Positions 22,801-45,315 of a DNA stretch of 64,000 nucleotides are shown here, in pieces (position 1 is the stretch's first letter; every line of letters starts with the position of its first letter). The notes below the pieces were generated by a model that ran no database searches, had not been told where the DNA came from, and saw only the letters and a program-made list of their open reading frames with translations. Origin of the DNA: Eutreptiella sp. 'Long Island Sound 2002' (Eukaryota > Protista > Euglenida); the NCBI GenBank assembly GCA_964036045.1, contig OZ038378.1:3348001-3412000 (forward strand), given 5' to 3'. A program made the position numbers and the translations under genes.

Positions 22801-24689
22801 ATTCAATTGACTTGCATGGTGAATTTCATTTGCAGTGTTTCCCCGTGAAAGGTGGTTTGCCGTAGGGGTGCTGCTGGGGCCTGGCGCGTCTGACGACCTG
22901 CAGAGCAACCCAAAGGGGGTGCCGCCTGCACGGTGCACAGGGTGCGGCGCGCGGTGCGACGTCAGCCCGGTGCGCACCCAAATGATGGTAACGCTAAACG
23001 TGGCTCAAAAGTGGGCAGTGGGCACTGAATGCAATGGTTGAGTGAATCGCATTCTGGTGTCTCCCTTCGTCTCAAGAGCTCACATGTCAATGAATTTGGA
23101 ACTGTTGGAGCCAGGCAGTGGTGTGTTTCATCTGCGAGGCACTATGAACAAGAGTGTGCCCGCCACCATCGGCCCAGCACCCCCCCGGATTGTGTGGCAA
23201 TCCGTTACGAACGGTCTGGTCATCCCCAGCTGTATCCAGATTGCCCACTCCACCGCTTCACATTCCCCATGTTGTGTGTTGAACCTTCCTTGGGCCGTGA
23301 GAGCCGCCGGCCCTTTTCTATCACACGGGGATGTGGGCAGCTGCAACCATCAACACCCAAGGGATGAAGTCTTTGGACCGCAGGAGGCTGTTGTTGCATG
23401 CAAACTCCTTCAACCACCGCGTCCCTGCCTACATTCAACAAGGGTGCCCGTTACAGTGAAAAAAAAAGTTCTTTCCTCTGACGTGCGCGGTGCATGCGGT
23501 GCGATTTCAGCACCCTCAAAGCCAAGAGGGCGCGCAGGCCACTGATTGCTGGGGGCCAGGAAGCTGTGTGCTGACAGTCAGGGATGTATCGGTGCGCTAA
23601 GTGCGCCTGTCAATGGGGCAATCCAACTCCGAAGTCCTGGCTTGGGTGATCTGTGGGACTCAAAAGGCGAGGACTCAAAAGGGTGCGGCGAGGGGGTAGA
23701 TTGAGCAGGGAGGAGTTCCCAAACATTTTGTCGTGGGACTCCATCCCTTTTCGTGACAAGGCGGAATGTAGGTCGCAGATAGTGCCCTGCAAGCTGCGGG
23801 GGTTCGTGAATAGGTCCCATTGGATTTCGGGGTGCGCAAGTCACAGGGCTGACCTCTTTGTTCAGCGAGGGCGGACCGGGACCACATACCGAAAGGGGGT
23901 ACTCCACCGCAGGACTGTTCGGCACTAGTCAAATGGCTTGGGCGGTTCGTACGACATATGTTACAAGCCATCTTGCGTGGCCATTGCCCACACCCTTGTT
24001 TAGTGACCACAGTACACGGTTGGTTCGTGCAGTCGGCCCTTTTTGCGGTTTGCCCGTGCGAAAGTACCAACGCACCGGTACTGGACCCTCTCACAGGGGC
24101 ACTTCCACACTCAGTCCCACAGTCCTACTAACCTTACCCCCCCCCCTTTGTAACCCCCCCCCCCCCTGGGGAGGAATGGTCATTTGGCCCAAAAAGCATG
24201 GAAAATACTGGGTGCCAAAGGCGCCAAAGAAAAATTCTATTGCCTTCGGCATGTCCACCTCGCAGAGAACTGCCGTGAGCAATGCACACTTGAGTGATGA
24301 GCTGTTGATGGGGATCTCGCTATGAAAATTAAATTGCCCAAATTCACAGAAACTTGCCTTGTTTTATTATGAGCATCTTAAAAAATTGGTCTCATTCCAA
24401 TTCGGGTTGTAGGGTGATGGTAAATTACTCAACACAAAATGTACTTGGAGAACCAAGGATAGAGGGGTTTAGTGGCGGTCTTTCCGACGTACCCTGGAGG
24501 CCCCGCCTTGCCGTCGTTCCCGACTTGCGGGGGCCGAATGGCCGGACTTTTGATTTGGCTTTGATTTGGAAAGCCCCGGAGTGTCCTCGCCAGTAGCCCT
24601 ACCCATCTCCGGAAGCGGCAGGCAAGTAAGTAGCTGGTGGGTGTATTTGGTTGCGGCGTTGTTGTATAGAGGATTACAAGCACACGACT

Positions 24690-24930
24690 AACAGGACGTG
24701 ACATGATGCAAAATCCCCAAAGCGTCGGTATTGCTTGTATGTAGACCGTGTTCAAGAGGTCAAGAAACCGACTACCAGGATTAGACATGATCCAAAATCC
24801 CCACAACGTCGGATCTTGGTTGATGGTGGAGGTGGTCGCCAAAATCCGATTAACAGGACTAGACATTGTCCAAAATCCCCACAGCACCGGGTTCTGGTTG
24901 TTGATGGAGGTGGTGTACCACATTGCCACA
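24690..24930. repeat. Three diverged ~80-bp tandem units (GACATGATCCAAAATCCCCACA core)
   Basis: The core recurs at about 24699, 24784 and 24862. Confidence 0.6.
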
Positions 24931-24933
24931 ATA

Positions 24934-24934
<1 letters not shown>

Positions 24935-25005
<71 letters not shown>
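24935..25005. repeat. (CA)n microsatellite
   Basis: Direct reading. Confidence 0.95.
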
Positions 25006-25006
<1 letters not shown>

Positions 25007-25322
25007 AAGCTCTTTTGATTTGCCCGCCGCTTGCGAGCCGATGTTGCTAGGCTTACATCATAATGCTGTTGATGCATATGCAAAAAGAGTTTTAAGGGTA
25101 GACTTGCAAAAGCAAAATGGGAATCACCCTTCGGCCTTCGGCAAGTGAAACCAATGACCATATTGCTACCGGCGCCACCGGTTGCGAAGCTCAAGTCATG
25201 GATCCCACTTGAGTCCGGTCACCTCAGGTGACGCACATCTTACATGTGTCATGCATGACATTGTGGTTGACTACTGGCATGCACACCATTACTACTTTGG
25301 ATGTGCCTAATAGTGTGCAGCA

Positions 25323-25900
25323 TTATGGCATTTTTTGCAACATCTCATATGTCCTAAGAAGTAATGCAAATCGTTCGGTGGCATGAACGTTCGTTTGATC
25401 TTTGTCCGGGTGAAGCTTTACTGATAGGTGAAGATATTGCTTGCGGATGTTAGCTTTGTTTGTAGCCCCAAGCAATTGCATGCCAACTTCAAAATTGTTC
25501 TTGTCCAAATATTCATACATTGCCGGATATGAAGCAATGGGGAGATCAAGTGATACATGCTCTTCATCGTCATTGGTGAAAAGTTTGGGTTGATGACCAG
25601 TTGACTCCTCTTGGTGAATAGCATGCCTCTTTTTTCTCGGGGGTAATGCATATTCTTCATCATCACTAGTGATGGCCTGTGGTCGAATGTTGGTTGTTTG
25701 CTTTTCGTTGAGACCTTTGTGTGACGATTGCTCCTTGCCTTTCTCATGTTTGTCAAGTTGATTGAAACTTTTTGAAGCAACACACGAAGAACAACGCTTT
25801 TTGGTACCAAGTTTCCATTGGCTCTTTGTAAAGTCTGCACGCAACCGCTGGATACCACAAGAGAAGCATTGTAGTGCATCTTGCAATGAACGTTTGGTGG
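25323..25900 (-). CDS. Helitron polyprotein part D: Stc1-like finger + C-terminal J (DnaJ) domain
   Basis: CFSCGIQRLRADFTKSQWKLGTKKRCSSC, then IRKQYLHLSVKLHPDKDQ...ATERFALLLRTYEML with an intact HPD (25404-25412). It joins part C by a frameshift in the long T run at about 25906-25917. Confidence 0.75.
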
Positions 25901-28164
25901 GCTTCTTTTTTTTTTTGTGAGCAATGTATGCATCTTTTGTTGCTGCCTAATGCTATTTGGGTAGCGGTAAAGGATATTTTTGGCTTTAATTCATTGCACG
26001 AAGCGCATTGTAGTCCCGCGGCTTGACAATGCACACATCTTTGGTCAGCACCTCCAGCATTGAATTCACAAGGCATTCTTTCAAGGTTGCAACATGGGCA
26101 GCAGATAGTTCTACAACGTTGGCACGTTGCATGTTTACCAAATTCGGAGTGCACACGCTCTTGCTGGCAAGAAGGGCAAGTGACTTTGGTGCATTGCTGG
26201 CATGTCCCTTTTGCAGTAATTTGTGATGCCATGCACTCATGTTGGCAAGAAGGACAAGTGACTTTGGTACAACGGTTGCATGTACCCCTTGCACTAATTT
26301 CGGATGCCATGCGCTCTTGTTGGCAAGAAGGGCACGTGACTTTGGTACATCGGTTGCATATACCTTTTGCACTCATTTCGGATGCCATGCGCTCTTGTTG
26401 GCAAGAAGAACAAGTGACCTTGGTGCATCGCTTGCATGTACCTTTTGAACTAATTTCGGATGCCATGCGCTCTTGTTGGCAAGAAGGGCAAGTGACCTTG
26501 GTACATCGGTTGCATGTACCTCTTGCACTCATTTCTGATGCCATACGTTCTTGTTGGCAAGAAGGGCAAGTGACCTTGGTACATCGGTTGCATGTACCCC
26601 TTGCACTCATTTCTGATGCCATGCGTTCTTGTTGGCAAGAAAGGCAAGTGACCTTGGTGCATCGTTTGCATGTACCTCTTGCCGTGATTTCTGATTCCAT
26701 GCGCTCTTGTTGGCAAGAAGGGCACGTGACCTTGGTACATCGGTTGCATGTACCTCTTGCACTAATTTCTGATTCCATGCGCTCTTGTTGGCAAGAAGGG
26801 CAAGTGACCTTGGTACATCGGTTGCATGTACCTCTTGCACTCATTTCTGATGCCATGCGTTCTTGTTCGCAAGAAGGGCAAGTGACCTTGGTGCATCGTT
26901 TGCATGTACCTCTTGCTGTGATTTCTGATTCCATGCGTTGTTGTTGGCAAGAAGGGCAAGTGACCTTGGTGCATCGGTTGCATGTACCTCTTGCACTAAT
27001 TTCGGATACCATGCGTTGTTGTTGGCAAGAAGGGCAAATGACCTTGTTTGCCACTTGTTTGTAACATTGTTTGCAACGGCGCTCTTCAAAAGGCATTTGC
27101 CACTGGGAAGGAGAAAAGCTTGGCATTGGCTTGGGGAGTCCACATCTGTTGCAAAACTTCATTTTTGTGACATCATGTGCACAATCATCACAAGTGAAAG
27201 GTGGGGGATTAGGTAGATCGGATGATGCAATATGATGGTAGTCTTGGCAACCACACTGCACACAAGTTGCAGCAACTTGCATTGAAATAAGATGCCTTGT
27301 GGTGATGTAGGTCAAAGTTTTTTCACGGAGTCTCTTTAGAAGGAATGTAGGACCAAGCGGGTCACCACGTTGGAAGATTTCCTTAGGAAAATGACGATAG
27401 ATGAGCAAATCCGAAGAGCATCGAACCCGACTAAGTGCAATATAGCACAAAATAGGGTCATCTGCTACCAAGTCTATAATGGCAGCATTCAAGGTTTGAC
27501 CTTGCGAACTATGGCTGGTAATGCCAAATGCAGGACCGATAGGAAACTGACGGCGGCTAACACTTAAAACGGGGTTCTTCTTGTTCTTATCTAGGTACCA
27601 TATCTTTGAAGTGGGAACAATCGGGTAAAGGCCGGGTCTCGTTAAGCCCGGGACTATCCAATTGGCATCCGGTACTTCAATGAAAAGCACGACGGGTACA
27701 TAATGTAGAATACGTACACCGCCTTTCTTTGGCACGGAGTTCTCACGTGGGTCTAGAATCCAACTATCAAGAAAGGCTTCTGTCCCACGTAACAAATTCT
27801 TTTGGATAGAGCGGTCAATGTGTTCGGTTAATGCAATTGGCAATCCTTGTACGAGAGGTAACATGCCATATAAGTTTGCAGTCCAACGATCATGGTATTG
27901 CAACCGACGTACACGGGTGTCCGCATCCGTTTTGGTGATGTTGTCTGTGGTTGGTCGATCAAATGCAGGACACCAAGTCAGGTGTTTTTTATTTGAAGAA
28001 GCGTAAAGAATGGCGCGTTGCTTGTTGATTGCGTATTTTAGGTCGTTTGTAGCGACAATCATTTTTGCACTAGAAAAATGGTCGGTCGTCAAGCGGGGAT
28101 CATGAGGCCCACAAAGAACGAATTGCATGAGCCATTCGTATGTCTCATTACGTAGTTTTACCAT
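25900..28164 (-). CDS. Helitron polyprotein part C: C-terminal PIF1 helicase + Stc1-like finger + 12 tandem 26-aa C4 zinc fingers
   Basis: QFPIGPAFGITSHSSQGQTL and YIALSRV helicase motifs. It joins part B by a 1-nt frameshift in the T4 run at 28156-28159. Confidence 0.85.
26110..27045 (-). repeat. Coding minisatellite, 78-bp unit x12 (KVTCPSCQQERMASEISARGTCNRCT)
   Basis: Direct reading of the ORF translation and the DNA periodicity. Confidence 0.95.
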
Positions 28165-31100
28165 GACGGCACTCTTCCAAGGCAGCTTGGAAACGAGGGT
28201 CTCCTTGAAAGCGCATGTTTTCCGTTAATTCCGTCATTCCTTGAATACCTTGGGATGCGTTGCCCCATAACAGATTTAGTCCGTGGGATGTTAGGGCATC
28301 AGGGTTCTTCTTTGTGGGCTCAACTATCATGGACGGTGGTACTGACATGAGAGAGAAGTCCTCCCCTGGAGGTGGTATTTGCCAAAAATCACCACAAAGA
28401 ATGATGTTGAACCCCCCAAAAGGACGTATTGTCCCATCCGGGTCACATTTGTATGTTCCCGCCTTTTGGGTGTGTGTGCGGAGTCGTTCCTCAAATTTTG
28501 CTAGAAGGCGAGGACTTACCATACTAATTTCGTCAATAATGATCCACCGTAGAGTGCAATGGCGTAGAAATAGGAAAGTTGATTTTTCTTTCGAGGCATC
28601 GTTCCCAAAAAGGTTCATGGCACCAAGTTGATGGAGAGTGGAACCACCAATCAAGCGTGCCATCTTCCCTTGAAAAGCCCCAATCTCAAAATGCTTGTCT
28701 TTGACATAACCAAGCAATTCAAAGAATTGAACTACTATACCCAGCGCTTTGGACTTCCCTGTGCCTGGGCCACCATGAAGCATCCAACGCAGAGGCTCAC
28801 TACTACCATGCATTCCATTGATGTCGTCACTGACTTCCTCTTTAACACGGTTAGCAACTATTTGTAGGAAGATTTGTTGACCCTTATTCAATTGTGGAAT
28901 GCAAATTGCTAGTGCAGCATCCACCTTAGAAAGGGATATTGAGGGTATGGGGTCAACAGTTGGCTCTAAATTAGTTTTGGTAGGGAATCCCTTTGAGGTG
29001 GTGGGCTCCGCACGTGCAGTGTTGCGTGCAGATTGTAGCAACTTGCGAAGGTTTGAGTATACTGGTGCGGGGCCGTTCGATTCAAAGTTGATGTTGGGCA
29101 AATTCGTGGCACGCCATGCTTCGTGGGCGAGTTTAATACCTGTTACAGAGTCCGAGGAAATTTGTTTGTCCTTCGACTCATTGGCACCTTTCTTTGCCGT
29201 TTTTGTGTTTAGTGCCGTGTCTAATTGTGTGTGATCTAGTTTCAAAGGTGGTATCGCCTTTGCTTCAGCAGAGTCTAGTATATCATCCTTGCAACGTACA
29301 CGAGAAACATAGAGAAATTGTTGGATGACTCTTTTCATGTGCAGAGTCAGTATGTTCCCAGAAACATACGCCTTCCAAGAGCTATGGAAAGCGTGTTTTG
29401 GATCACTCAGGGCATCAACATAAGGTACATGTTGCGAGGCCAAATCTTGATGCAAGCAATATGGACGGAAATACGCTGAACACACTTTGGCGGTTTGCTC
29501 TGGATCATTGTTGCGTGCCATAGGAGACCCTATCCACATGGGCACGAAGGGGCGTGGGTTGTACTCCATAACCCAAAGATGTCTAACTTTTTCTAGAGGG
29601 GGTAGATCTGGAAAGGGAATCCAAGTAGTGCCACCCGCGTTACGGATTCGGAAATGTTTACCCGGATGAAATTCATAACCTTCGCCTTCGAGCTTTTGCG
29701 TACAAATGTATGCACGCCCTTCCGACGTGAGATCAGCATGGTACTTTGGATCACCATCCGCTAGTCTTGGGTTGATAGGAAAAGACACAGGAACTAGTCT
29801 CCAACGAGACACGAACTCATAAGGGCTTAGCCAATGTACCCGTGGGTCCTTCCCACGATAGCCGTACATCATTGCCAAATCCGGAACAGCTTGTAGTGAA
29901 GCAGCTTTACGTGTGCGCGAGACCCGGAAAACACGTTTATCTGCAATTCTTTTTGTTGGGCGATTTCGATTTTTGCGTTCTAACAATGAAACAAATTTGT
30001 TCCCGGCAAAAGTGGTTGTTATTGCTGTCTTCACACACTCCGCGGCGGTCACATCATCTTTACGACGATTGCACATCAAGTTCACAACATCAACAGCTCC
30101 ACGTGCGGTGCCCCGGGCTAACGTGTCGCTCAAGAAACGTTGCGTATGACGTCTTGCAATGTATTGTATGCTATTGGGACGTTTTGTTTTTTGAAGGTCA
30201 TTGGATAAATTGTCATGCCCACGCAACCATCTAGTAATCTCCTTTGTTGCAATAGGAGTTCCTTTTGCAACATAATCAGAGAAATACCCAATGGCACTGT
30301 CTTGTGCCAATTGAAGAGCAATTTCAATTGTAGTGTTGCTTGTTGCCAGTTCGTTCAAACATGTATCTGGAGTCGTGCAAAATTTGGAATGGGTTTCTGG
30401 ACAAATGGGCAAGCGATAGAGGACTTGAACATCACTATTACAACGGAGCAAAGAGGTTAGGACTGGATGTGTGCCATTGAGCCAACTACAGTTTCGCGGC
30501 CCATGCAATGACCCTAATGCATTACGTTGACCCGTAACCTTCAACCCAAATTGACAAGCGAGTCCGTAGCACAATATGGAAGCTTCGGGCACGAGCTCCT
30601 TGTCACGGGGAAAGCGATGCTTGCAAACATTTGGTTCACCTTTACGGACACACCCTGCCAAAAGTCGACGAGCCTCTGGGTCATCAGTGTTAGCCAATGG
30701 ATGGATATGGTGGTTCCAATGTTCCAAATTTGTTTGGACTTCCTTGCAATAGTGAACGTTCCATAAATGCACCATAGCCATATCATCCGATGCTGTATCC
30801 GTAACCAATGAGCATAAAGGAGAGCGGAAAAGGAAGGAGAATGTCGAGTCATATTCCGGCCAATCATCTTCTAGTATTTTCCTGCGCATGTGAAAACCAC
30901 ATAAATCATGATATACCTCCTGACAAACGTAACTTTTGTAAGCAGTGTATTGCTTTACTAACTTTTCGCCTTCTTTTTTGATTAACAAAGAGATGTCGTG
31001 TATTGAGGAGAATTGACTCAAACATTGGGGCCATAACAAGCAGTGAATGTGTAGAACCCCTTCTTTTTGGTTCTCAATGCTCCCTAAACAAGCATCTAAC

Positions 31101-32032
31101 CTTCCAATGAATCCACCTTCGCTAGAAGCAACCGAACCAAAGATGTTTTGGCATGCCGATTTTCCCATTGGAGAGTTGCACCGTGGACAACAAAGACACA
31201 CACGAACACCAAAGATGGTGGACATTGCCAAACGCACTATAATGCGAAATGCGGACATGCAAGCCAGGGGGTCTTGGGAGAGCATGAGCTTGCGTTGTTC
31301 ATATGATGGCAAAGCCGAAATCAATGAGTCAACTGGTAATTCCAGAGATGGATGTGCATGCCCTCCCCATTGTCTCAACCATGGTTGAGCTATGCAAACC
31401 GGATCATTTTGGCTTGTCCTTGATAGGCGAAGCATGAGCGTGTTGTGTCTCTCATTGGGAGAAAATGTGACAATGAGAGGGGCTCCATAAAAAACACGGA
31501 AGGCTTGGATTTCATGTCGCATCAAGCGGCGCACCTCATGTGTGCCTTCTATGCGCGTAGAAACATTTTGTACATTTTGTAAGATGTCTCTAGCTAGGGG
31601 GGGTAAATTTGGCACAAAGGGAACTTTTGACAAGTCACCGTTTACTTGGCGAAGAGAGCCATCTTTGGTGAGGTAGCTTCCGGTCAAACTTGCTGTTATT
31701 GCTTTGCTTGCATTGCAATACTGTTCTGCTGTAATTTGCTCGGACGCCAAAGTAGTACCATCACAAAGCCTTCCTTTGAAGATGTATCGAGAAAGATTAA
31801 TCACGGATCGGAAAATCAAGTTCCACGCTGCAAACACAAAAATCCAATCCCTCCTAAATTGACCCTCAATACGACGCACTAAAGCTGCCGCGAATTGTGG
31901 GAAGTCAACTCGAGGTGCATTGGAGTCACGTCTCCATTGCGAACGATTGCGTAAATCGGGGCTACCAACACCAAAATCAAATAAGAACGCAAACGCAATT
32001 ATTATGAAGCTTGGGTGTAGTTGGTCTTGCAT
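28148..32032 (-). CDS. Helitron polyprotein part B: HUH Rep endonuclease + N-terminal half of PIF1 helicase
   Basis: Rep motifs YGAPLIVTFSPNE and SIENQKEGVLHIHCLLW (about 31032-31079). Helicase motifs LHGGPGTGKS (about 28751-28780), IIIDEISMV, PFGGFNIILCGDFWQIPP and ELTENMRF. Confidence 0.9.
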   Translation of the reverse strand: MQDQLHPSFIIIAFAFLFDFGVGSPDLRNRSQWRRDSNAPRVDFPQFAAALVRRIEGQFRRDWIFVFAAWNLIFRSVINLSRYIFKGRLCDGTTLASEQITAEQYCNASKAITASLTGSYLTKDGSLRQVNGDLSKVPFVPNLPPLARDILQNVQNVSTRIEGTHEVRRLMRHEIQAFRVFYGAPLIVTFSPNERHNTLMLRLSRTSQNDPVCIAQPWLRQWGGHAHPSLELPVDSLISALPSYEQRKLMLSQDPLACMSAFRIIVRLAMSTIFGVRVCLCCPRCNSPMGKSACQNIFGSVASSEGGFIGRLDACLGSIENQKEGVLHIHCLLWPQCLSQFSSIHDISLLIKKEGEKLVKQYTAYKSYVCQEVYHDLCGFHMRRKILEDDWPEYDSTFSFLFRSPLCSLVTDTASDDMAMVHLWNVHYCKEVQTNLEHWNHHIHPLANTDDPEARRLLAGCVRKGEPNVCKHRFPRDKELVPEASILCYGLACQFGLKVTGQRNALGSLHGPRNCSWLNGTHPVLTSLLRCNSDVQVLYRLPICPETHSKFCTTPDTCLNELATSNTTIEIALQLAQDSAIGYFSDYVAKGTPIATKEITRWLRGHDNLSNDLQKTKRPNSIQYIARRHTQRFLSDTLARGTARGAVDVVNLMCNRRKDDVTAAECVKTAITTTFAGNKFVSLLERKNRNRPTKRIADKRVFRVSRTRKAASLQAVPDLAMMYGYRGKDPRVHWLSPYEFVSRWRLVPVSFPINPRLADGDPKYHADLTSEGRAYICTQKLEGEGYEFHPGKHFRIRNAGGTTWIPFPDLPPLEKVRHLWVMEYNPRPFVPMWIGSPMARNNDPEQTAKVCSAYFRPYCLHQDLASQHVPYVDALSDPKHAFHSSWKAYVSGNILTLHMKRVIQQFLYVSRVRCKDDILDSAEAKAIPPLKLDHTQLDTALNTKTAKKGANESKDKQISSDSVTGIKLAHEAWRATNLPNINFESNGPAPVYSNLRKLLQSARNTARAEPTTSKGFPTKTNLEPTVDPIPSISLSKVDAALAICIPQLNKGQQIFLQIVANRVKEEVSDDINGMHGSSEPLRWMLHGGPGTGKSKALGIVVQFFELLGYVKDKHFEIGAFQGKMARLIGGSTLHQLGAMNLFGNDASKEKSTFLFLRHCTLRWIIIDEISMVSPRLLAKFEERLRTHTQKAGTYKCDPDGTIRPFGGFNIILCGDFWQIPPPGEDFSLMSVPPSMIVEPTKKNPDALTSHGLNLLWGNASQGIQGMTELTENMRFQGDPRFQAALEECRHGKTT

Positions 32033-32140
32033 GGTGGTTCCTGTTCGAATGCAAAAAGAATCAATGCTGTCTTGCAGTGTCTCACTATCAACTGGCTCAT
32101 CACCAGTGGTGTTAGTTGGTTTGTCCCCACCCTGGCTTCT

Positions 32141-35100
32141 TTATGTAGAAACATGTGTCTTCGTGGAATCCACACTTTGCATTTCATATTCTTGCCCCGA
32201 CATGGCACTTATATGCGAAGAAAGGTTTGGAGGACTAGAACTTATGCTTTCCACTTCATCCTCGTCTGATGACATGTCATCTTTCGCGGTAGGGAACTTC
32301 AAGGCTTCTTCAACGGATTGGATACGATGTATACGTTGTTCATTGATGTCAACGGCGGAATTGGAGTATCTATCCAATTGCACGCCGTTGACATGGGACA
32401 GAAATATGTTGCCATCAATGGAGCGTCCGTGCTCGTGAGGTAACGCGGCCTTTCCGTCATGAAGGTCAGGGCCATTCTTGTGAGGCACTATGACCCGTAT
32501 GATCTCGGGAGGGATGCCATCAACCGGAAGGAGTGTTGATCGTTGTTCAACATCAACCATATTTATACCCACGTACGCGGGGTGGTTGCGCTCAATCATA
32601 CATGCTATCAAGTGTACGACCACAGCACGACGCACGCGCCCGTGCTGTACAACTAATTGCGTGTCATCTTGAGTGTGGCTTTCGACAACCACTTGCACGA
32701 GGCCAGCCAAATCCTCACCTAATCTGGGTAAATGATTCCTTCCACCATTTTGGGAAAATGTTTGGAGGACTTCCTCCCATGGCAGAGAAAAACAAGTGAC
32801 ATTTCCCTTTGCGCCAAGGCGTGTGTTTGACAAATGAGCTAAACTTGAGCCACTTACTCGGTCATTGAACCTTTGTAATGTCAAGCTCAACATTGCAGTG
32901 TTCACTGGACTGGCACACAACAATTCAATGTATGTAACTTGGTGCTCATAGATGTACTCATTAATGTACCCTATCCACATTTCATTTGCCAAAGCAAATG
33001 GAAGCATTTTTGGGCGTGGTCGGGATAATTCATCGGAGCAAGATGCACATATTGGCAATTCACATTTTGGACACAAGGGGCAATTCATGTCGTGTATGCC
33101 ACATGCATTACGAGGACATGCAACACAACGACGATCTTCGGGACAACATAGGACTTGAATAATTCCATCTGTGAAAGGAACATTCAGGCACCATTTGGTT
33201 TGTACTTGTTGTCTCATGCCACTGTCTTTGGTTCCGTAGGCATTGAAATATGTGGTGAGACCAAGTAATCTCTCGGTGTCTTCTTTGCACATCCCAAAAA
33301 AGGATCCTCCATTGTTGGAGTCCAATGGGGAATGCCATTGAATTGGTGGCCTTCCATGACATTCAAAATCCACACTATGAATTTGTGCACAAATGCTGCA
33401 TACGAGTGACATAATGTTTTCATCTCGGTAGCGCCGCGCGAATGAAACAGCAATGCGACGGTCAATTGCAAAACCAACCAAGGGCATGCGCTGACGTTCA
33501 ATGTGGGCAATGGCTTCTTGGTACAAATGGTATGCATCTTGCATCGTGATACAAGCATGTGATAATTCGTCAACGTGGGCAAAAGATGCTTTGTGGTGGC
33601 CCGTCACATGCTCGATTAAGCTAGCTTCGTCATCTCCTTGCCACGTGCAACCACGAAAAGCACAATGCTTTTGTGGTAGAACAATTCCGTTTGATTTCAA
33701 TTCATCCAAACAATTTTGGAAAGCCCATGGTATTGTGGGAAATGGCGACAATTCGGCAGATAAAACGCCAATGAAGCATTCCACTTTAGCCAGTGGGGAT
33801 GGTGATAGCGGTGAAGGAAGGGTTGCTAGCATAGTGGTGAATTGAAAGTCGGATGTTTGATCCGCATTAGCTGGTGACCCCGGCCTAGTATTGGGCACAG
33901 ACATTTGTGTATCTCCACTTTCATTTGAGTCATTGGATGTGGTTTTTGTGCAATGCGACTTGCTGGAACAAGTATCATCTTGATCATTGCAAGTGTCATT
34001 GGATTCATCAGACACGTGTTCAGCCGCACTCATTGCGCAGTCATGCATTGACTCATCATCCCCATGTCGGCTTTCTTGACCAGTGCAATTATCACTGAAC
34101 ATGTTGGACATGTGCTCAGTTGCACTGAATGTGCAATCATGTACCGATTCACAATCCTTGTTGGACATTTGCTCAAGTGCACTCATACCTTTGTCACTTG
34201 GATGGGCATTGTTCAAATCTTGAATTGTGGTTTTGAACATATACATGTATGGTGTGAAGTCGTCATTGTTCAGAAGCCATTGATTGGGCGCCTCAACAAG
34301 TGTGACACCTTCATCGTCACAGGCGTACCACAAACCTTTCCGTTGAGTCAAGCACACATAATGACCCGACAAGGTAGAGCTACCGCGGTGTAAGATGATA
34401 CTCATCAACTGCAAATGCAACACCTTATTTGGTGAGCCTACGGAACAATCTTCAATAGTAAAATGTGATGGGCACCCATAAAAACATTGTAGCTTTGAAG
34501 GTTGTTGAGTAGCTGCATTGAAAGTGAACAAGGACAAATGTATCATGATATATTGCGATGCCGTTATCAGTTGCTTTCGACGCTTCAAGCACGCCATTCC
34601 CGAACAAGCCGTACAATTTCCAACATTACTTTCTGTGGCAAATAAACTTTGCATGGCACCTTGTAAACCTTGTGTATTACTTACACCGACCGTCCAAGAA
34701 GAAATGTCGATGCATACTTGTAAATTGCCATATTGACAATTTGAGCATGAAATGGAATGTAAAACTTGGCTGCCTACTTTGGACATTGCTTGTGGTACAA
34801 AGGGGAATTCAAGAGTCGACGCCTCTGCTTCAGTGCGAACGTCTGCACTTTGCAATGGTAATACAAGGTTCCAAATCCACGCGAATAGCAAGCCCAGAAA
34901 TTCATGCACATCTTGTTGCCGGTTGTGTGTTGGATGGAAATGAACTAAGTACTCCGCAGCATGGGCAACATGAATTCGCAATTGTTGGTGACAATCATCA
35001 TTATTACCAAACGTGTATGGCGATTTGGGTGGCAGTTCTCCATTACCACATTCCATCAAAGCAATCAAAAGGTGTTCCACTGCAAGACGGATTTGAGAGT

Positions 35101-35227
35101 CTGTCTTATTGGATTCCAAGTCACTGCTCACAGAATCAACAAAAAGTGGGATTGTGCCAAGGAATTGGAGACTGGATGCCGCAAAGCAGCTGTTGTTCAT
35201 CCAAACTAGTCCATAATGCGCTGTCAT
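32141..35227 (-). CDS. Helitron polyprotein part A: USP/peptidase C19 domain, low-complexity linker, C2H2 finger, Cys cluster, DUF6570-like region
   Basis: Cys box GLVWMNNSCFAASSLQFL, QQDVHEFL, His box IILHRGSSTLSGHYVC...WYACDD, C2H2 CAFRGC...LIEHVTGHH, then FALANEMWIG...GNVTCF...VRRAVVVHLI. It is in the same frame as part B and separated from it by one TAA (32141-32143). Confidence 0.8.
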   Translation of the reverse strand: MTAHYGLVWMNNSCFAASSLQFLGTIPLFVDSVSSDLESNKTDSQIRLAVEHLLIALMECGNGELPPKSPYTFGNNDDCHQQLRIHVAHAAEYLVHFHPTHNRQQDVHEFLGLLFAWIWNLVLPLQSADVRTEAEASTLEFPFVPQAMSKVGSQVLHSISCSNCQYGNLQVCIDISSWTVGVSNTQGLQGAMQSLFATESNVGNCTACSGMACLKRRKQLITASQYIMIHLSLFTFNAATQQPSKLQCFYGCPSHFTIEDCSVGSPNKVLHLQLMSIILHRGSSTLSGHYVCLTQRKGLWYACDDEGVTLVEAPNQWLLNNDDFTPYMYMFKTTIQDLNNAHPSDKGMSALEQMSNKDCESVHDCTFSATEHMSNMFSDNCTGQESRHGDDESMHDCAMSAAEHVSDESNDTCNDQDDTCSSKSHCTKTTSNDSNESGDTQMSVPNTRPGSPANADQTSDFQFTTMLATLPSPLSPSPLAKVECFIGVLSAELSPFPTIPWAFQNCLDELKSNGIVLPQKHCAFRGCTWQGDDEASLIEHVTGHHKASFAHVDELSHACITMQDAYHLYQEAIAHIERQRMPLVGFAIDRRIAVSFARRYRDENIMSLVCSICAQIHSVDFECHGRPPIQWHSPLDSNNGGSFFGMCKEDTERLLGLTTYFNAYGTKDSGMRQQVQTKWCLNVPFTDGIIQVLCCPEDRRCVACPRNACGIHDMNCPLCPKCELPICASCSDELSRPRPKMLPFALANEMWIGYINEYIYEHQVTYIELLCASPVNTAMLSLTLQRFNDRVSGSSLAHLSNTRLGAKGNVTCFSLPWEEVLQTFSQNGGRNHLPRLGEDLAGLVQVVVESHTQDDTQLVVQHGRVRRAVVVHLIACMIERNHPAYVGINMVDVEQRSTLLPVDGIPPEIIRVIVPHKNGPDLHDGKAALPHEHGRSIDGNIFLSHVNGVQLDRYSNSAVDINEQRIHRIQSVEEALKFPTAKDDMSSDEDEVESISSSPPNLSSHISAMSGQEYEMQSVDSTKTHVST

Positions 35228-35559
35228 TCTTAATGGACTGGATGGTAGTCGGTCAATCGAAGATCAAGGCAAAGTTGACAGAAAAGTGCAAGAGCACCCT
35301 AAGACAAAGATCCTGAAAGAACAAAAGACACAATGCATGATAAACATTCTCGAGCAATGAACGATGAGCGAAGGGTGGGGGAACACAAGTTAATTTAAGG
35401 TAAATATCATGCAACCTTCTTTGGAATGCCTTTGGGATTATTTGGGTCTACCTATTGGGTGCAGTGATCACATACGGCAAGCACTCAAACTCATCAAACA
35501 GCAAAGGGGAATGAAGTTCAAAGTTAAGTGCCCCATGTCATCTACGTATTGAGGTCTTA

Positions 35560-36030
35560 TGTGTCCTATAGGTCTTATATCGTAAATAGGAGGTAGAGGT
35601 GTTATAGCTCTTACAAGTTATGTAAATGCCATACGCCCTGTTGGTGCTGTAGGTGCTATAGGTGTAATAGGCCCGGTACTTGTGATAGGTTGTGTACGTC
35701 CTGTATGTCCTACATCTCCTATAGGTTTAATAGGTCCCGTAGGTTTTTAGGTGCTACATGTCATATAGGTGGGTGGGTGTCATTGGTGCCATAGGTTGTT
35801 TTGGTCATATGAGTCCCACACGTTGCATAGGTGCTATAGAGCCTATGGGTGATATGGGTCTTATAGGTACAATAGGTAATATAAAGCCTCCACGCGTAGT
35901 ACACATGGGGTCATAGGTGAAGGGCCTCGTCCTCCTAGTTGAGTATCTTATAGGTACAATAGGTAATATAAATCCTCCACGCGCAATACACATGGGGTCA
36001 TAGGTGAAGGGCCTCGTCCTCACAGTTGGG
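35560..36030. repeat. Degenerate ATAGGT-rich low-complexity tract with an 87-bp tandem duplication, in the Helitron 5' non-coding region
   Basis: CTTATAGGTACAATAGGTAATATAAA...GGGCCTCGTCCTC occurs at about 35860-35934 and 35947-36021. Confidence 0.7.
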
Positions 36031-36271
36031 TATCCGGCCTACCAGGTTAACCTTCATAATTTTGCACCGGTCCCTAATGAGAACACTTTGATGGTGTAGT
36101 TAACAAAATAAAAAAGGCCTCATGGCACGCAACCTAGTGAAATATGCATATCCATAATATGCCACAAAAAAGAGTGTTCTTATTAGGGATGACAGAGGGT
36201 TAGCTCGAATGGTGGTGCGAGCTTCGCAATGTGGATCTCAGGACATTGCCATATAGCCACAAGTGTTCACA

Positions 36272-39200
36272 CCAAGCTGGTTCACACAACGGAGATCCAA
36301 GCTGGTTCAGAAAACGAAGATCCAAGCTGGTTCACACAAAGGAGATCCAAGCCGGTTCACACAACGGAGATCCAAACTGGTTCACACAATGGAGATCCAA
36401 GCTGGTTCACACAACGGAGATCCAAGCCGGTTCACACAATGGAGATCCAAGCTGGTTCACACAATGGAGATCCAAGCTGGTTCACACAATGGAGATCCAA
36501 GCTGGTTCACACCATGGAGATCCAAGCCGGTTCACACAATGGAGATCGAAGCTGGTTCACACAATGGAGATCCAAGCCGGTTCACACAATGGAGATCCAA
36601 GCTGGTTCACACAACGGAGATCCAAGCTGGTTCACACCATGGAGATCCAAGCTGGTTAACACAATGGAGGTCCAAGCTGGTTCACACAACGGAGATCCAA
36701 GCTGGTTCACACAATGGAGATCCAAGCCGGTTCACACAACGGAGATCCAAGCTGGTTCACACAACGGAGATCCAAGCTGGTTCACACCATGGAGATCCAA
36801 GCCGGTTAACACAATGGAGATCCAAGCTGGTTCACACAACGGAGATCCAAGCCGGTTCACACAACGGAGATCCAAGCTGGTTCACACAATGGAGATCCAA
36901 GCCGGTTCACACAATGGAGATCCAAGCTGATTCACACAACGGAGATCCAAGCCGGTTCACACAACGGAGATCCAAGCTGGTTCACACAAAGGAGATCCAA
37001 GGCGGTTCACACAACGGAGATCCAAGCTGGTTCACACAATGGAGATCCAAGCCGGTTCACACAACGGAGATCCAAGCTGATTCACACAACGGAGATCCAA
37101 GCTGGTTCACACAACGGAGATCCAAGCTGGTTCACACAAAGGAGATCCAAGCCGGTTCACACAACGGAGATCCAAACTGGTTCACACAATGGAGATCCAA
37201 GCTGGTTCACACAACGGAGATCCAAGCTGGTTCACACAATGGAGATCCAAGCCGGTTCACACAACGGAGATCCAAGCTGGTTCACACAACGGAGATCCAA
37301 GCCGGTTCACACCATGGAGATCCAAGCTGGTTCGCACAAAGGAGATCCCAGCCGGTTCACACAACGGAGATCCAAACTGGTTCACACAATGGAGATCCAA
37401 GCTGGTTCACACAACGGAGATCCAAGCTGGTTCACACAATGGAGATCCAAGCCGGTTCACACAATGGAGATCGAAGCTAGTTCACACAACGGAGATCCAA
37501 GCTGGTTCACACAATGGAGATCCAAGCTGGTTCACACAACGGAGATCCAAGCTGGTTCACACAATGGAGATCCAAGCCGGTTCACACAATGGAGATCCAA
37601 GCTGGTTCACACAACGGAGATCCAAGCTGGTTCACACAATGGAGATCCAAGCCGGTTCACACAATGGAGATCCAAGCTGGTTCACACAACGGAGATCCAA
37701 GCTGGTTCACACAACGGAGATCCAAGCCGGTTCACACAATGGAGATCCAAGCCGGTTCACACAATGGAGATCCAAGCCGGTTCACACAATGGAGATCCAA
37801 GCTGGTTCACACAACGGAGATCCAAGCTGGTTCACACAACGGAGATCCAAGCTGGTTCACACAATGGAGATCCAAGCCGGTTCACACAACGGAGATCCAA
37901 GCTGATTCACACAACGGAGATCCAAACTGGTTCACACAATGGAGATCCAAGCTAGTTCACACAACGGAGATCCAAGCTGGTTCACACAATGGAGATCCAA
38001 GCCGGTTCACACAATGGAGATCCAAGCTGGTTCACACAATGGAGATCGAAGCTGGTTCACACAACGGAGATCCAACCTGGTTCACACAATGGAGATCCAA
38101 GCTGGTTCACACAACGGAGATCCAAGCTGGTTCACACAATGGAGATCCACGCCGGTTCACACAATGGAGATCCAAGCTGGTTCACACAACGGAGATCCAA
38201 GCTGGTTCACACAATGGAGATCCAAGCTGGTTCACACCATGGAGATCCAAGCTGGTTCACACAATGGAGATCCAAGCCGGTTCACACAATGGAGATCCAA
38301 GCCGGTTCACACAATGGAGATCCAAGCTGGTTCACACAACGGAGATCCAAGCTGGTTCACACAATGGAGATCCAAGCCGGTTAACACAATGGAGATCCAA
38401 GCTGGTTCACACAAAGGAGATCCAAGCCGGTTCACACAACGGAGATCCAAGCTGATTCACACAACGGAGATCCAAGCCGGTTCACACAACGGAGATCCAA
38501 GCTGGTTCACACAACGGAGATCCAAGCTGGTTCACAAAACGGAGATCCAAGCTGGTTCACACCATGGAGATCCAAGCCGGTTCACAAAACGGAGATCCAA
38601 GCTGGTTCACACAATGGAGATCCAAGCCGGTTCACACAACGGAGATCCAAGCTGGTTCACACAATGGAGATCCAAGCCGGTTCACACAATGGAGATCCAA
38701 GCCGGTTCACACAATGGAGATCCAAGCTGGTTCACACAACGGAGATCCAAGCTGGTTCACACCATGGAGATCCAAGCCGGTTCACACAATAGAGATCCAA
38801 GCTGGTTCACACAATGGACATCCAAGCTGGTTCACACAACGGAGATCCAAGCTGGTTCACACAATGGAGATCCAAGCCGGTTCACACAATGGAGATCCAA
38901 GCCGGTTCACACAATGGAGATCCAAGCTGGTTCACACAACGGAGATCCAAGCCGGTTCACACCATGGAGATCCAAGCCGGTTCACACAATGGAGATCCAA
39001 GCTGGTTCACACCATGGAGATCCAAGCTGGTTCACAAAACGGAGATCCAAGCTGGTTCACACCATGGAGATCCAAGCCGGTTCACACAATGGAGATCGAA
39101 GCTGGTTCACACAACGGAGATCCAAGCTGGTTCACACAACGGAGATCCAAGCTGGTTCACACAATGGAGATCCAAGCTGGTTCACACAACGGAGATCCAA

Positions 39201-39700
39201 GCTGGTTCACACAACGGAGATCCAAGCTGGTTCACACAACGGAGATCCAAGCTGGTTCACACAATGGAGATCCAAACCGGTTCACACAACGGAGATCCAA
39301 GCTGGTTCACACAACGGAGATCCAAGCCGGTTCACAAAACGGAGATCCAAGCTGGTTCACACAATTGAGATCCAAGCCGGTTCACACAATGGAGATCCAA
39401 GCTGGTTCACACAACGGAGATCCAAGCCGGTTCACACAACGGAGATCCAAGCTGGTTCACACAACGGAGATCCAAGCTGGTTCACACAACGGAGATCCAA
39501 GCCGGTTCACACAACGGAGATCCAAGCTGGTTCACACAATGGAGATCCAAACCGGTTCACACAACGGAGATCCAAGCTGGTTCACACAACGGAGATCCAA
39601 GCTGGTTCCCACAACGGAGATCCAAACTAGTTCCCGAAACGCATTACGCAATGGAGATCCAAGGCGGTTCACACAACGGAGATCCAAGCCGGTTCCCACA
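36272..39700. repeat. Homogeneous 25-bp satellite (GGAGATCCAAGCYGGTTCACACAAY), roughly 135 copies
   Basis: Continuous 25-bp periodicity with no unique spacers. The long ORFs here are artefacts. Confidence 0.97.
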
Positions 39701-40084
39701 ATGCGTAAATGCCCCCGGTGGGTGACCTAAGACCCCACCCACCCCTATATGAAGAGAGGTGCCCGGCCATTGCCTGGAGGGGCCACAAAGTATGGAAGAC
39801 GACGGCAAACACGAAAGAAGGGAGTAGTGGGAATGGAGATGCAAGCTTGTTTATACAATCGGGATCCAAGCAGGTTCCCACAACCGAGATCCAAGCCGGT
39901 TCCCACAACGGAGATCCAAACTAGTTCCCGAAACGCATTACGCAATGGAGATCCAAGGCGGTTCACACCACGGAGATCCAAGCCGGTTCCCACAATGCGT
40001 AAATGCCCCCGGTGGGTGACCTAAGACCCCACCCACCCCTATATGAAGAGAGGTGCCCGGCCATTGCCTGGAGGGGCCACAAAG
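39604..40084. repeat. 187-bp block duplicated at 294-bp spacing, forming the right end of the satellite
   Basis: 39604-39790 and 39898-40084 are near-identical (satellite-derived units + unique GC-rich tail). Confidence 0.85.
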
Positions 40085-40311
40085 AAGAAGTGTGTAGTCA
40101 TGATTTGCCAACTCAGAGTCCATCTCAAGGGCCCACACAAGGCGTGTGGGAGTCCATCCCGCGCCAGGGGCCCCTTGTCTGCAGGATGACGATTGCATTT
40201 AACAAGGTCGATTTTTGAATAAGCAGGTTGTGTACCATTCCCTGCGAGCCCCCCCCCCGCCGCGACCTAATACCGAACTATGGTGAAAACCACATAAATA
40301 CAGCCTAAAAA

Positions 40312-43039: not shown

Positions 43040-43239
43040 NNNNNNNNNNNNNNNNNNNNNNNNNNNNNNNNNNNNNNNNNNNNNNNNNNNNNNNNNNNNN
43101 NNNNNNNNNNNNNNNNNNNNNNNNNNNNNNNNNNNNNNNNNNNNNNNNNNNNNNNNNNNNNNNNNNNNNNNNNNNNNNNNNNNNNNNNNNNNNNNNNNNN
43201 NNNNNNNNNNNNNNNNNNNNNNNNNNNNNNNNNNNNNNN
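43040..43239. other. Assembly gap (200 N)
   Basis: Run of n. Confidence 1.
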
Positions 43240-45315
43240 CCCCCACCCCCCCCCCTAAAAAGTGGGTTTCAAGTGGGGGGGGTCTGGGGGGGTCCGGACC
43301 AAAAAACTCATTGGGGGATGCGTTTATTGGACAAAATAATGATTTTACAAGGGGTTAAACTAACAATTCAACCCCTTGGGGTAGGGTACGCGAATAGGCC
43401 CAAATGGGGGGGTATGTGGCGTTTTCCCCATATATACGCCCACCTGGCTTTGATCTAACAACCTCTGCGAGGTGATTTTACAAGGCGCCGAACCCGCCGA
43501 AGCTGATTTACACTGTGATACTATGTTGCAGTTTGGTGGTGCTATCCCCCCCCCAGGGGGGGGAACTGTCACGACACTGGTGGGGAGATTACAGGGGGGG
43601 GGGGGTAAGGTACATGCAAAACCCATTCTGTGGGTGACGGTTGGTGAAGTCGGTGTTGGGGGGGGGGGGGGCGCAGCTGATCCCGTTCACCCTCCCGAAG
43701 AGAAAGGATAGACGACCTTGACCTTTGCGGGGGGGGGGGGGGGATGACAAAGTGAGTACACAGGTGTGGTTTGTGCACGAGAACTGCAGCCGTCCGGACG
43801 TGTAGTCAGAGCTTGCTTTGGGGGCTGGCCTCAAACCTTGTGCGACCATGCAGGGCATGGCCCACAGTGAGGGAGTACGTAGCAATCCTAATGGTGCCGC
43901 AATGCATACATGGGCATGTGCCCTGTATTTCACATGCACCAGCGCCCATGCAATGGCAGAGGGGTGGTAGTAGGGAGCCGCCCGCTGCGGCACATTTATC
44001 AAGTCCTGCAGGACAGGCATGCGAGTGTCCCTTGGGGCTCCCTGCAGACCAACTGAGCAGCGACGGAGGTTTTGTGGTTGGAGGCCTTCCTCCGCAACGG
44101 TGGAGTCAAAGATCAGAATCATATCCCATGTCCGCTCCACGCCATGGCACGAAGCCATATGAAGAACGGCAGCGCTTGCCCCCGAGGACGGAGGCACATC
44201 TGCGTCTTTCCCCACTTTTGAGATCATCAACCTCACCGCTCTCTTCTTTCTCCTCTCTCTTCTTGGAGCAAGAGCTGAGCGGCCCCCCTCCAGTGTACTT
44301 GCGTGTCCAAGTTGGCTTAACTCCCCCTCGCCCCCTGTACCCACCAATTACAGCCCCCCCCCCCCCCCCCGCGCGCCTCTCACTGCTGCATTTACTTATT
44401 ACCAAATTGGTGGCATGTCCCTCTCCTCAGTTTCTGCCGATAGCAAAATCTGTGACCGCAGACGCGCTCAGTGTCGCAAAATGCTTTTTAGAGAGGAAAG
44501 TTGAGGTCTAGCGAATCCAGTTGAGGCGTGTGGCGTTCAGTAGGTGTGTATACCCGTGCCCTGTCATGGGCTCGCCCCTTAGGTGGGCGCCCACACAGGG
44601 GTCTGAGCATGGGCGTTGGCATGGGGCATTGGCAAGGATCTGAGCATGGGTGCATGTCTTTGTGTCATCCTGGGCAAGAGGATGGGCAAAGCTGTGTGTC
44701 AGCGCCGACCACACACTTTTGCTGCGGTGCGAACAGAGCCGAGCGGTATGATAGGGGACCCTACGGTTTGGTTTCGGATGCGCCTGGGCATCACAAGGCG
44801 TGACACAGATGCACTTGGGCGGAGGCTTCATACCCCTGGACCCAAGGATAGTCTCACCAGGCTGAAGGACCGGATCCAGGGATCTAGGTCTTTTGGTGAC
44901 CATTGCTGCTGGACTCAGTATGGCCGGCGGTCCTGCATGAGTACTGACGCCGCTCCCGCTGACCATCCTCTGTTGTGCTGGTGCGGGTGTTGGTACTGGG
45001 GCTCGCCAAGAGGGGTGGGGCAGGGGATTGAACCCGTCTTTTGCCCTGCAACGAACCCCTGGCGCACCAACATCCTGAACCCCAATAGCCCAATGCGCTC
45101 CTTAACATGGTGTTACCACCATCGTGTGCACACGCACACACGCCAACACACACAAACCGGCCAAAGGGGGGGCGCAGGCGCCTCCTTTCACTTTTACCCA
45201 GTGATCGGGGATGGGTGTATACCACAACGCCCGTACACAGGCACGCGCAAGCACACGCACGCAACCAAGGTGATGCCATCAGCGCCGCAGGCAGCACAAC
45301 TAGCACAACCACACT

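Follow-up and report, generated by a model that had tools for sequence, protein, structure and literature searches.

Deubiquitinases have been described from rolling-circle transposons before. The main text of HELIANO, published in 2024, names UCH (PF00443) among 20 domains that are stably carried by Helitron-like elements and places UCH cargo almost exclusively in HLE2 (PMC11417382). HSP20 is also listed there as HLE2 cargo, and DUF6570 ahead of Rep is given as a marker of HLE2 versus HLE1 (PMC11417382). For Helentrons, OTU and VTD deubiquitinases have been published; the VTD type was shown to be active, and Helitrons have been proposed to profit from deubiquitinases (PMC9741609). Very little is known about the host factors that Helitrons need. 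In other replication systems, polyomavirus large T antigen has a J-domain, an origin-binding domain and an SF3 helicase, lambda O/P and plasmid P1/F RepA engage DnaJ/DnaK, and the chaperones thus engaged remodel the initiation complexes.

The window (the whole stretch of 64,000 nucleotides that was analysed) contains four minus-strand frames that join into a protein of roughly 3,300 aa. Two of the stop-free frames, 35263-32144 (1,040 codons) and 32140-28151 (1,330 codons), lie in the same frame with one stop between them, and two others follow at 28224-25756 (823 codons) and 25946-25326 (207 codons). The domain order is USP, acidic linker, C2H2-like finger and DUF6570, Rep (HUH), PIF1, zinc-module array, basic tail and J-domain (Table 1). 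Lesions were mapped by aligning the window to three intact sister copies, with which it shares 98.3-99.2% nucleotide identity. The differences relevant to the frame are the TAA, two A-runs with one A too many and a 138-nt deletion, with no others found; the deletion takes out 46 aa of basic, NLS-like sequence directly before the J-domain. An uninterrupted ORF is present in four or more sister copies of this genome (contigs C7 and C18, 3,450 aa each; C4, 3,497 aa; C13, 3,320 aa), with Pfam domains and order as in the window. Judged from these frames, the USP and the J-domain belong in frame to one RepHel protein in the intact sisters.

An earlier note on this DNA had joined the four ORFs into one Helitron protein with the same domain order, intact USP Cys/His/Asp and J-domain HPD residues, and three lesions. 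The sister ORFs of 3,320-3,497 aa, Pfam on the window and the motifs located below bear out this reconstruction, and the three lesions were found exactly where the note had placed them; the 138-nt deletion had been missed. The note had also considered that other copies might lack these domains in frame, and the intact sisters have both of them in frame.

Table 1. Features of the Helitron copy and its neighbour, with positions in the window
Feature	Position	Strand	Basis or remark
Window copy of the Helitron	24231..40324	(-)	about 16.1 kb; 5' end truncated, ORF broken
3' UTR and element 3' end	24231..25322	(-)	ends in ...GCCGAAGGCAATAGAATT, then T's
Giant RepHel reading frame	25323..35227	(-)	ATG at 35227; stop at 25323-25325; one stop and two +1 frameshifts
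C-terminal J-domain, helices I-III	25326..25481	(-)	Pfam DnaJ 2e-8
138-nt in-frame deletion site	about 25550..25551	(-)	relative to sister copies
Frameshift 2: A-run, one A too many	about 25906..25917	(-)	sister alignment
CxxC-x13-CxxC zinc-module array	25987..27153	(-)	translation; TRF
PIF1-type SF1 helicase, C-terminal limit approximate	27200..28804	(-)	Pfam PIF1 7e-10, AAA_19, AAA_30
Frameshift 1: A-run, one A too many	about 28156..28159	(-)	sister alignment
Rep (HUH endonuclease) domain	31034..31879	(-)	Pfam Helitron_like_N
In-frame TAA	32141..32143	(-)	CAA in 3/3 intact sisters
C2H2-like finger, Cys-rich region, DUF6570	32528..33802	(-)	Pfam DUF6570 5e-12
Acidic, Ser-rich low-complexity linker, aa 336-475	33803..34222	(-)	translation
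USP (peptidase C19) domain, aa 1-335	34223..35227	(-)	Pfam UCH, PDB sequence, AlphaFold, Foldseek
25-bp tandem array, about 134 copies	36272..39633	(-)	TRF; inside element, upstream of ORF
294-bp repeats and remnant of 5' leader	39538..40324	(-)	TRF, sister-copy comparison
Neighbour outside element: non-LTR retrotransposon reverse-transcriptase ORF	40312..43458	(+)	Pfam RVT_1 3e-25, zf-RVT

According to our analysis, the window very probably contains an autonomous Helitron-like element of group 2 (Helitron2 type, without AP endonuclease) in a copy that has died recently. That it is a Helitron, as the earlier note had claimed, follows from the Pfam matches to Rep (Helitron_like_N, E 3e-12 for the window, 1e-10 for an intact copy) and to PIF1, which lies C-terminal to Rep in one protein, together with two motifs, HIH (HUH) at 31043-31051 and GYFSDY (two tyrosines) at 30272-30289. 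In the window, the matches to Rep, PIF1 and DUF6570 all exceed Pfam's curated thresholds. The helicase has its Walker A motif GGPGTGKS at 28751-28774 and runs across the first frameshift. Upstream of Rep, a C2H2-like finger (HCAFRGC...HVTGHH, 33593-33667) accompanies DUF6570 (3e-12 in an intact copy), and the element is assigned to group 2 because DUF6570 is the HLE2 marker in the HELIANO main text (PMC11417382). The intact protein of 3,450 aa gave no Exo_endo_phos (AP endonuclease) match up to E 0.1, and the element is therefore not a Helentron in the strict sense.

Behind the helicase, the zinc-module array of the window consists of about 12 units of 26 aa, followed by Stc1-like modules of the form CxxC...F..Q...CxxC. 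At the DNA level it appears as a 78-nt tandem repeat at 26156-27046 (TRF: period 78, 11.4 copies). The intact sisters have about 16 modules of 26 aa, and the number of units differs between copies. With the Stc1 profile (PF12898), the tails of two related Helitron families of the genome (families B and C; the element described here is family A) score 23-24 bits, just under the cut-off of 24.8, and the intact family A protein gives no match.

In the 2.28-Gb genome the family numbers dozens to hundreds, copies and fragments taken together. Homology to sister copies spans 40324 to 24230/24231 in the window, and all 14 other copies examined extend at least 90 nt farther upstream than the end of the window copy. 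The true 5' end, which lies within tandem units of about 195 bp in the sisters, is absent here. A non-LTR retrotransposon reverse-transcriptase ORF adjoins the truncated end. The 25-bp array upstream of the ORF is also found in sister copies. The 3' end, set by flank divergence in 16 copies, reads ...GCCGAAGGCAATAGAATT plus T's; it has a small GCC-GAA-GGC hairpin, and the junctions are T-rich. An Rfam scan of the window gave no match.

The N-terminal domain has the hallmarks of a USP. Its Pfam UCH match (E 3.5e-20 in the window; about 1e-19) is above the curated cut-off, and the catalytic motifs are in place: the Cys box NSCFAAS at 35174-35194 with catalytic Cys14 in NSCF, the QQD box (RQQDVHEF) at 34898-34921, the His box SGHY at 34358-34369 with catalytic His289, and CDDEG (in WYACDDEGV) at 34307-34321, which contains the catalytic Asp. 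Sequence matches in the PDB include Ubp8, USP46, USP12 and USP36. The AlphaFold model adopts a USP fold of palm, thumb and fingers (pLDDT 81, pTM 0.83), and a Foldseek search with it against the PDB returned more than 360 USP chains at E below 1e-3. USP46, USP1, Ubp8 and USP2 were the best of these (E 1e-18 to 1e-17), and no single USP subfamily stands out among the structural matches.

The domain is shared with families B and C at 34-45% identity, and across the three families the Cys, QQD and His boxes and the WY.CDD motif are invariant. Families B and C likewise have USP and DUF6570 in one ORF (P0191). By this comparison of sequences, the USP was fused before three or more families of the genome diverged. 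A search of 1.84 billion representatives with the USP domain returned fragments and diverged Helitron families, all of this genome, and otherwise only generic USPs of scattered taxa (birds, fish, sponge, plants, algae); some of the long matches score high through tandem USP repeats. Neither a close host paralogue nor a link to the lungfish/axolotl elements was found among these representatives.

The J-domain at the other end of the protein scores 34.7 bits with Pfam DnaJ in the window and 30.8 in an intact copy, both above the cut-off of 27.8. Its HPD tripeptide lies at 25404-25412, within KLHPDKD and between helices II and III, and the protein stops right behind helix III, without helix IV. 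Among PDB sequences, 33 of the 34 matches are J-domains, with DNAJA3 as the best (2e-4), and the alignments cover helix II, HPD and helix III. The one other match was the phage helicase UvsW (E 0.9). The structural model came from a shallow alignment and is of low confidence (pLDDT 48); the helices predicted for the domain correspond to I-III. Every intact copy of either subfamily keeps HPD, and the single copy without it is decayed. A word search for the source of the J-domain found nothing beyond same-genome fragments, and in the ESM Atlas J-domain clusters were matched only below the trust level. A J-domain family with many copies was noticed besides, a possible further Helitron. The domain was found in family A only and was absent from the ORF tails and downstream ORFs of families B and C. 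Since these families transpose, or have transposed, without it, the J-domain is not essential to such elements.

Between subfamilies C7 and C4, the dN/dS values of the separate parts are as follows: USP 0.26, J 0.15, Rep 0.05, PIF1 0.12 and linker 0.68, the linker (0.5-0.7) being indistinguishable from neutral. The synonymous excess has p = 1.7e-5 for USP and p = 0.003 for the J-domain, the latter with 14 substitutions only. Judged by these substitutions, the USP and the J-domain are both under purifying selection. It is unlikely that the two are passively captured host gene fragments without a role for the element, even though Helitrons are well known for capturing genes, families B and C have no J-domain and the HELIANO main text regards extra domains as ancient captures that are possibly non-essential (PMC11417382). 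Passive capture does not sit well with two complete domains held in frame at the extreme ends of a 10.4-kb ORF that is open in several copies, nor with a dN/dS of 0.15-0.26 next to a linker at 0.68. The invariance of the USP catalytic motifs among diverged families and the absence of a close host paralogue from the representatives searched likewise speak against it.

From the two domains it can reasonably be inferred that the element may counter ubiquitination and recruit Hsp70. The USP would strip ubiquitin or a ubiquitin-like modifier off the transposase itself, or off a host protein where transposition takes place, and this removal might shield the transposition machinery from degradation or ubiquitin signalling. 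The J-domain, in turn, would dock host Hsp70 and set off its ATPase, and Hsp70 could then help to fold, load or dismantle the very large Rep-helicase-DNA complex. We tentatively posit, with a probability of roughly 0.4, that a eukaryotic rolling-circle transposase has built in both Hsp70 recruitment and ubiquitin removal, which would make Helitron transposition in this lineage chaperone-dependent in the way of polyomavirus, lambda and plasmid initiation, and convergently so.

The USP might instead act as a protease that processes the giant polyprotein, like the papain-like or USP-like proteases of RNA viruses, rather than on ubiquitin attached to host proteins or the transposase. The protein is very long, low-complexity linkers separate its modules, and viral deubiquitinases often also cut polyproteins (PMC9741609). 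However, the intact 3,450-aa protein has no LRGG, RGG or other site resembling the ubiquitin C-terminus, and the sole L.GG matches sit within the helicase core; because no useful site of this kind is present, we regard self-processing as quite improbable. USP enzymes, moreover, normally require the body of ubiquitin for substrate binding. That the long ORF is a chance alignment of separate genes (USP, RepHel, zinc-finger and DnaJ-like) in one frame, which would agree with the HELIANO main text, where UCH lies outside the RepHel ORF in the surveyed elements (PMC11417382), is highly improbable given that four independent copies of two subfamilies are stop-free over 10,000-10,500 nt in one frame, that the poorly conserved linkers are open as well, where stops would build up quickly if untranslated, and that USP and DUF6570 share an ORF in families B and C too.

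If Hsp70 recruitment and ubiquitin removal are indeed built into this transposase, Helitron transposition would have its first concretely named host factor. A J-domain that is kept by selection at the RepHel C-terminus makes Hsp70 a candidate host factor, and this is directly testable; natural copies with an uninterrupted 10.4-kb ORF make experiments possible without sequence reconstruction. The USP is the third deubiquitinase class fused to RepHel, after OTU and VTD, and strengthens the published idea that such elements gain from deubiquitination by any enzyme class (PMC9741609). The gain is limited, as USP cargo is already in the literature and the functions are inferred.

The earlier note knew of no USP and J-domain combination in Helitrons. 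This holds only in part: UCH had already been published in HLE2, according to the HELIANO main text (PMC11417382), whereas the J-domain, the in-frame USP-RepHel fusion and their combination appear unreported. Our literature search brought up no RepHel protein reported to carry a J-domain, and co-mentions of Helitron with DnaJ, J-domain or Euglena were incidental only.

Outside the genome, the nearest relatives are giant RepHel proteins from dinoflagellates and from marine metagenomes (Symbiodinium kawagutii, Polarella glacialis; P0001-P0013), which are about 30% identical over 60-75% of the protein length. The common region begins at aa 476 and runs from the C2H2-like finger through DUF6570 and Rep to PIF1. 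These relatives have other N-terminal extensions, of 1,400-1,700 aa and without Pfam match, and Pfam found neither a UCH nor a DnaJ domain in them. Further afield, T antigen, lambda O/P and RepA are similar in being initiators that bear a helicase and carry, or depend on, a J-domain for Hsp70, as the RepHel protein may do. They are unrelated to it, and the resemblance would be functional only. In T antigen the J-domain is N-terminal and the helicase of the SF3 type, whereas here the J-domain is C-terminal and the helicase belongs to SF1 (PIF1).

Among transposons, the element resembles the UCH-bearing HLE2 of the HELIANO main text in having DUF6570 before Rep and a match to the UCH model PF00443, a likeness that consists in the shared Pfam model (PMC11417382). 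HSP20, which is also listed for HLE2, is a chaperone-type cargo (PMC11417382). As described in that main text, UCH forms a separate ORF and occurs mainly in lungfish and axolotl, whereas in our element, from a protist-type genome, it makes up the N-terminus of RepHel in one frame; the J-domain, present in our element, goes unmentioned there (PMC11417382). With the OTU and VTD Helentrons (PMC9741609) the element shares a deubiquitinase that lies in the RepHel frame, N-terminal to Rep, but this deubiquitinase is of the USP/C19 class and comes without AP endonuclease, together with a J-domain and a zinc-module array.

Four consecutive stop-free stretches on the minus strand of the window, from 35263 to 25326, make up the coding region of the Helitron, which we assign to family A. 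The earlier note had joined these four ORFs into a single protein by correcting one TAA and two homopolymer frameshifts, and exactly these lesions were found on aligning the window to three intact copies. The alignment also exposed a fourth defect absent from that note, an in-frame deletion that removes a basic, NLS-like stretch ahead of the J-domain. As it still shares 98.3-99.2% identity with its sisters, the window copy died recently. At least 57 matches to stretch 1 and at least 226 to the tail were scored across the genome (2.28 Gb, 2,317 contigs), and in all four sister copies fetched, named C7, C18, C4 and C13 after their contigs, the reading frame is a single uninterrupted ORF, as the proposed joining implied. 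The Pfam domains of the intact C7 protein and their order are identical to those of the window, and all protein analysis was done on natural intact copies. Family A thus encodes one giant RepHel protein (Rep plus PIF1 helicase) with an intact USP domain at its N-terminus and a J-domain at its C-terminus. The number of zinc modules differs from copy to copy. While the observation of the earlier note was in this way confirmed, its interpretation is only partly supported.

Features of the window, sister copies of the element, and loci of related Helitron families in the same genome
Feature	Position	Strand	Details
Stretch 1	35263-32144	minus	UCH/USP 3.5e-20, DUF6570 5e-12 (Pfam)
Stretch 2	32140-28151	minus	frame of stretch 1 past single stop; Helitron_like_N 3e-12, PIF1 7e-10 (Pfam)
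Stretch 3	28224-25756	minus	shifted frame; remainder of helicase and 26-aa module array
Stretch 4	25946-25326	minus	shifted frame; DnaJ 2e-8, 34.7 bits vs cut-off 27.8 (Pfam)
CxxC-x13-CxxC zinc-module array	26156-27046	minus	26-aa tandem modules, 78-nt repeat
In-frame TAA	32141-32143	minus	CAA in sisters (alignment, window vs three intact copies)
Frameshift 1	~28156-28159	minus	one A too many in A-run (alignment vs three intact copies)
Frameshift 2	~25906-25917	minus	one A too many in A-run (alignment vs three intact copies)
138-nt in-frame deletion	~25550	minus	alignment
25-bp tandem unit, ~134 copies	36272-39633		upstream of ORF, within element
294-bp repeats	39538-40084		upstream of ORF, within element
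Non-LTR retrotransposon RT ORF, 1,048 aa	40312-43458	plus	RVT_1 3e-25, zf-RVT; adjoins truncated 5' end of Helitron
NHL repeats, then BTB/POZ domain (ORF)	8223-9716	plus	
C7 copy			ORF 3,450 aa
C7 protein domains (Pfam)			UCH 7-332; DUF6570 739-891; Helitron_like_N 1118-1399; PIF1 2133-2287; DnaJ at extreme C-terminus
C18 copy			ORF 3,450 aa; 99.6% identity with C7
C4 copy			ORF 3,497 aa; 94% identity with C7
C13 copy			ORF 3,320 aa
Family B/C locus (L039/L040)	C1:1469183-1477774		
Family B/C locus (L041/L042)	C3:162906001-162922000		
Family B/C locus (L043/L044)	C10:646001-662000		
Family B/C locus (L045/L046)	C15:24808001-24824000		

The catalytic residues of the USP domain had been described as apparently intact, and the Cys box (NSCF), QQD box, SGHY and WYACDD motifs are all present. 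Its sequence matches Ubp8, USP46, USP12 and USP36 in the PDB, and an AlphaFold model for which 25 sequences were aligned has good confidence scores (pLDDT 81, pTM 0.83). Every structural match of this model is a solved USP, among them USP46, USP1, Ubp8 and USP2 (E ~1e-18 to 1e-17); since the scores differ little from one USP subfamily to the next, they give no indication of the substrate. Among 1.84 billion representative proteins, a search returned fragments of family A, three diverged proteins of 33-37% identity and generic USPs from scattered taxa. The cluster of one diverged protein includes P0191 (889 aa), which is 100% identical to a site in the same genome as the window and combines UCH with DUF6570 in a single ORF, after which come Helitron_like_N and PIF1.

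The last ~55 residues of the protein (MQLLGATNKANIRKQYLHLSVKLHPDKDQTN.HATERFALLLRTYEMLQKMP) comprise helix I, a basic helix II, HPD and helix III, directly followed by the stop codon. Of 34 sequences matched in the PDB, 33 are J-domains, with alignments that span helix II, HPD and helix III and with DNAJA3 as the best (2e-4); the odd one is the phage helicase UvsW (E 0.9). The HPD, likewise described as apparently intact, is retained in both family A subfamilies and lost in one decayed copy only. The structure model of the J-domain is poor (pLDDT 48) because the alignment held near-identical sequences only. Elsewhere in the genome, a scan for DnaJ (PF00226) found a complete J-domain at an identical 67.2 bits in at least 45 places, in open frames of 240-1,428 aa (for example, C10:53412757-53412951, C12:9621998-9622192 and C26:24035520-24035714), probably another multi-copy, perhaps mobile, J-domain family.

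Comparison of the intact subfamilies C7 and C4 yielded dN/dS values of 0.26 for the USP, 0.15 for the J-domain, 0.05 for Rep, 0.12 for PIF1, 0.20 for the zinc array and 0.68 for an acidic linker, all of which are upper bounds because neutral changes after insertion push the ratios towards 1. Synonymous changes are significantly in excess in the USP (23/46, p = 1.7e-5) and the J-domain (8/14, p = 0.003), and not in the acidic linker (p = 0.27). According to these substitution patterns, both domains are under purifying selection, with few changes behind the J-domain test. Passive capture of the two domains by the element is therefore unlikely, as selection and the conserved motifs both speak against it. 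That they are separate genes sharing one frame is also unlikely, given that 10.4 kb stay open in four copies.

P0191 and related loci proved, once fetched, to represent two more families of Helitrons, B and C, with the architecture USP-DUF6570-Rep-PIF1-zinc region and, in one family B copy, an ORF of 2,864 aa. In the RepHel core they share 47-52% identity with family A, and in the USP 34-45% with family A and with each other. Because every catalytic motif is unchanged at this divergence, the USP fusion is older than the separation of families A, B and C and has been kept functional. No J-domain was found in the ORF tails or downstream ORFs of families B and C, and the tails give near-threshold matches to the Stc1 zinc domain.

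Homology with the sister copies extends from 40324 to 24231 (~16.1 kb) and includes the 25-bp and 294-bp arrays, which also occur in the sisters, though not at equal length; in C18, a distance of 9.4 kb separates the 5' region from the start codon downstream. The 3' end is sharp in 16 copies (...GCCGAAGGCAATAGAATT followed by T's), with diverging flanks beyond. The true 5' end is missing from the window copy, as 14 of 14 other copies extend at least 90 nt further upstream. The last ~230 nt of the adjoining RT ORF are found again near other Helitron copies. In sister loci (C7 copy, L021/L022; also C13 copy, L027/L028), the element is flanked on both sides by head-to-tail arrays of ~195-bp units that include its first bases, and in 6 of 16 copies such units come immediately after the 3' end (3' flanks in L067-L069 and L072). 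Group-2 Helitrons are known to have short non-autonomous derivatives in tandem arrays, which these arrays resemble. The NHL-BTB/POZ ORF of the window probably represents a host gene, either whole or as a single exon.

We posit that the USP would free the transposase, or a host protein present where transposition takes place, of ubiquitin or a ubiquitin-like modifier, which would shield the machinery from degradation or ubiquitin signalling, and that the J-domain would recruit Hsp70 to fold, load or dismantle the assembly that the ~390-kDa protein forms with DNA. It is very improbable that the USP instead processes a polyprotein, as the protein offers no supporting cleavage sites. The interest of the element is moderate and lies chiefly in the J-domain and its testable link to Hsp70.

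The Rep HUH motif (HIH), the two-tyrosine motif and the helicase Walker A are all present. DUF6570 is a published marker of Helitron-like element group 2 (HLE2; PMC11417382), and no AP endonuclease was found in a Pfam scan of the intact C7 protein; the element is therefore a Helitron2-type element rather than a Helentron sensu stricto. Its nearest relatives outside the genome (~30% identity across 60-75% of the length) are giant proteins of 2,100-4,000 aa from the dinoflagellates Symbiodinium kawagutii and Polarella glacialis (P0005, P0007, P0010) and from marine metagenome contigs (P0001, P0006). Their homology to the family A protein begins at its C2H2-like finger (aa 476). P0001 and P0006 have N-terminal extensions of their own (1,400-1,700 aa) with no Pfam match; neither UCH nor DnaJ was found in a Pfam scan of these two.

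The earlier note had named no precedent for the pairing of USP and J-domain in Helitrons. For the J-domain and for the pair this stands insofar as we did not find a report of either, or of an in-frame USP fusion: DnaJ does not appear in the main text of the HELIANO study (PMC11417382), and literature searches on Helitrons with DnaJ or a J-domain gave incidental co-mentions only. A USP as an addition to Helitrons is already published in kind. Of the 20 additional domains that HELIANO records as stable cargo of Helitron-like elements, UCH, DUF6570, Herpes_teg_N and HSP20 are almost confined to HLE2, with UCH enriched in two subgroups, mostly from lungfish and axolotl (PMC11417382). In zebrafish, Helentron ORFs contain VTD deubiquitinase domains that cleave ubiquitin and NEDD8, and Erven et al. 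argue that deubiquitination benefits Helitrons whatever the enzyme class (PMC9741609). In the HELIANO elements, UCH is placed in ORFs other than RepHel (PMC11417382), whereas in family A the USP lies in frame with RepHel.
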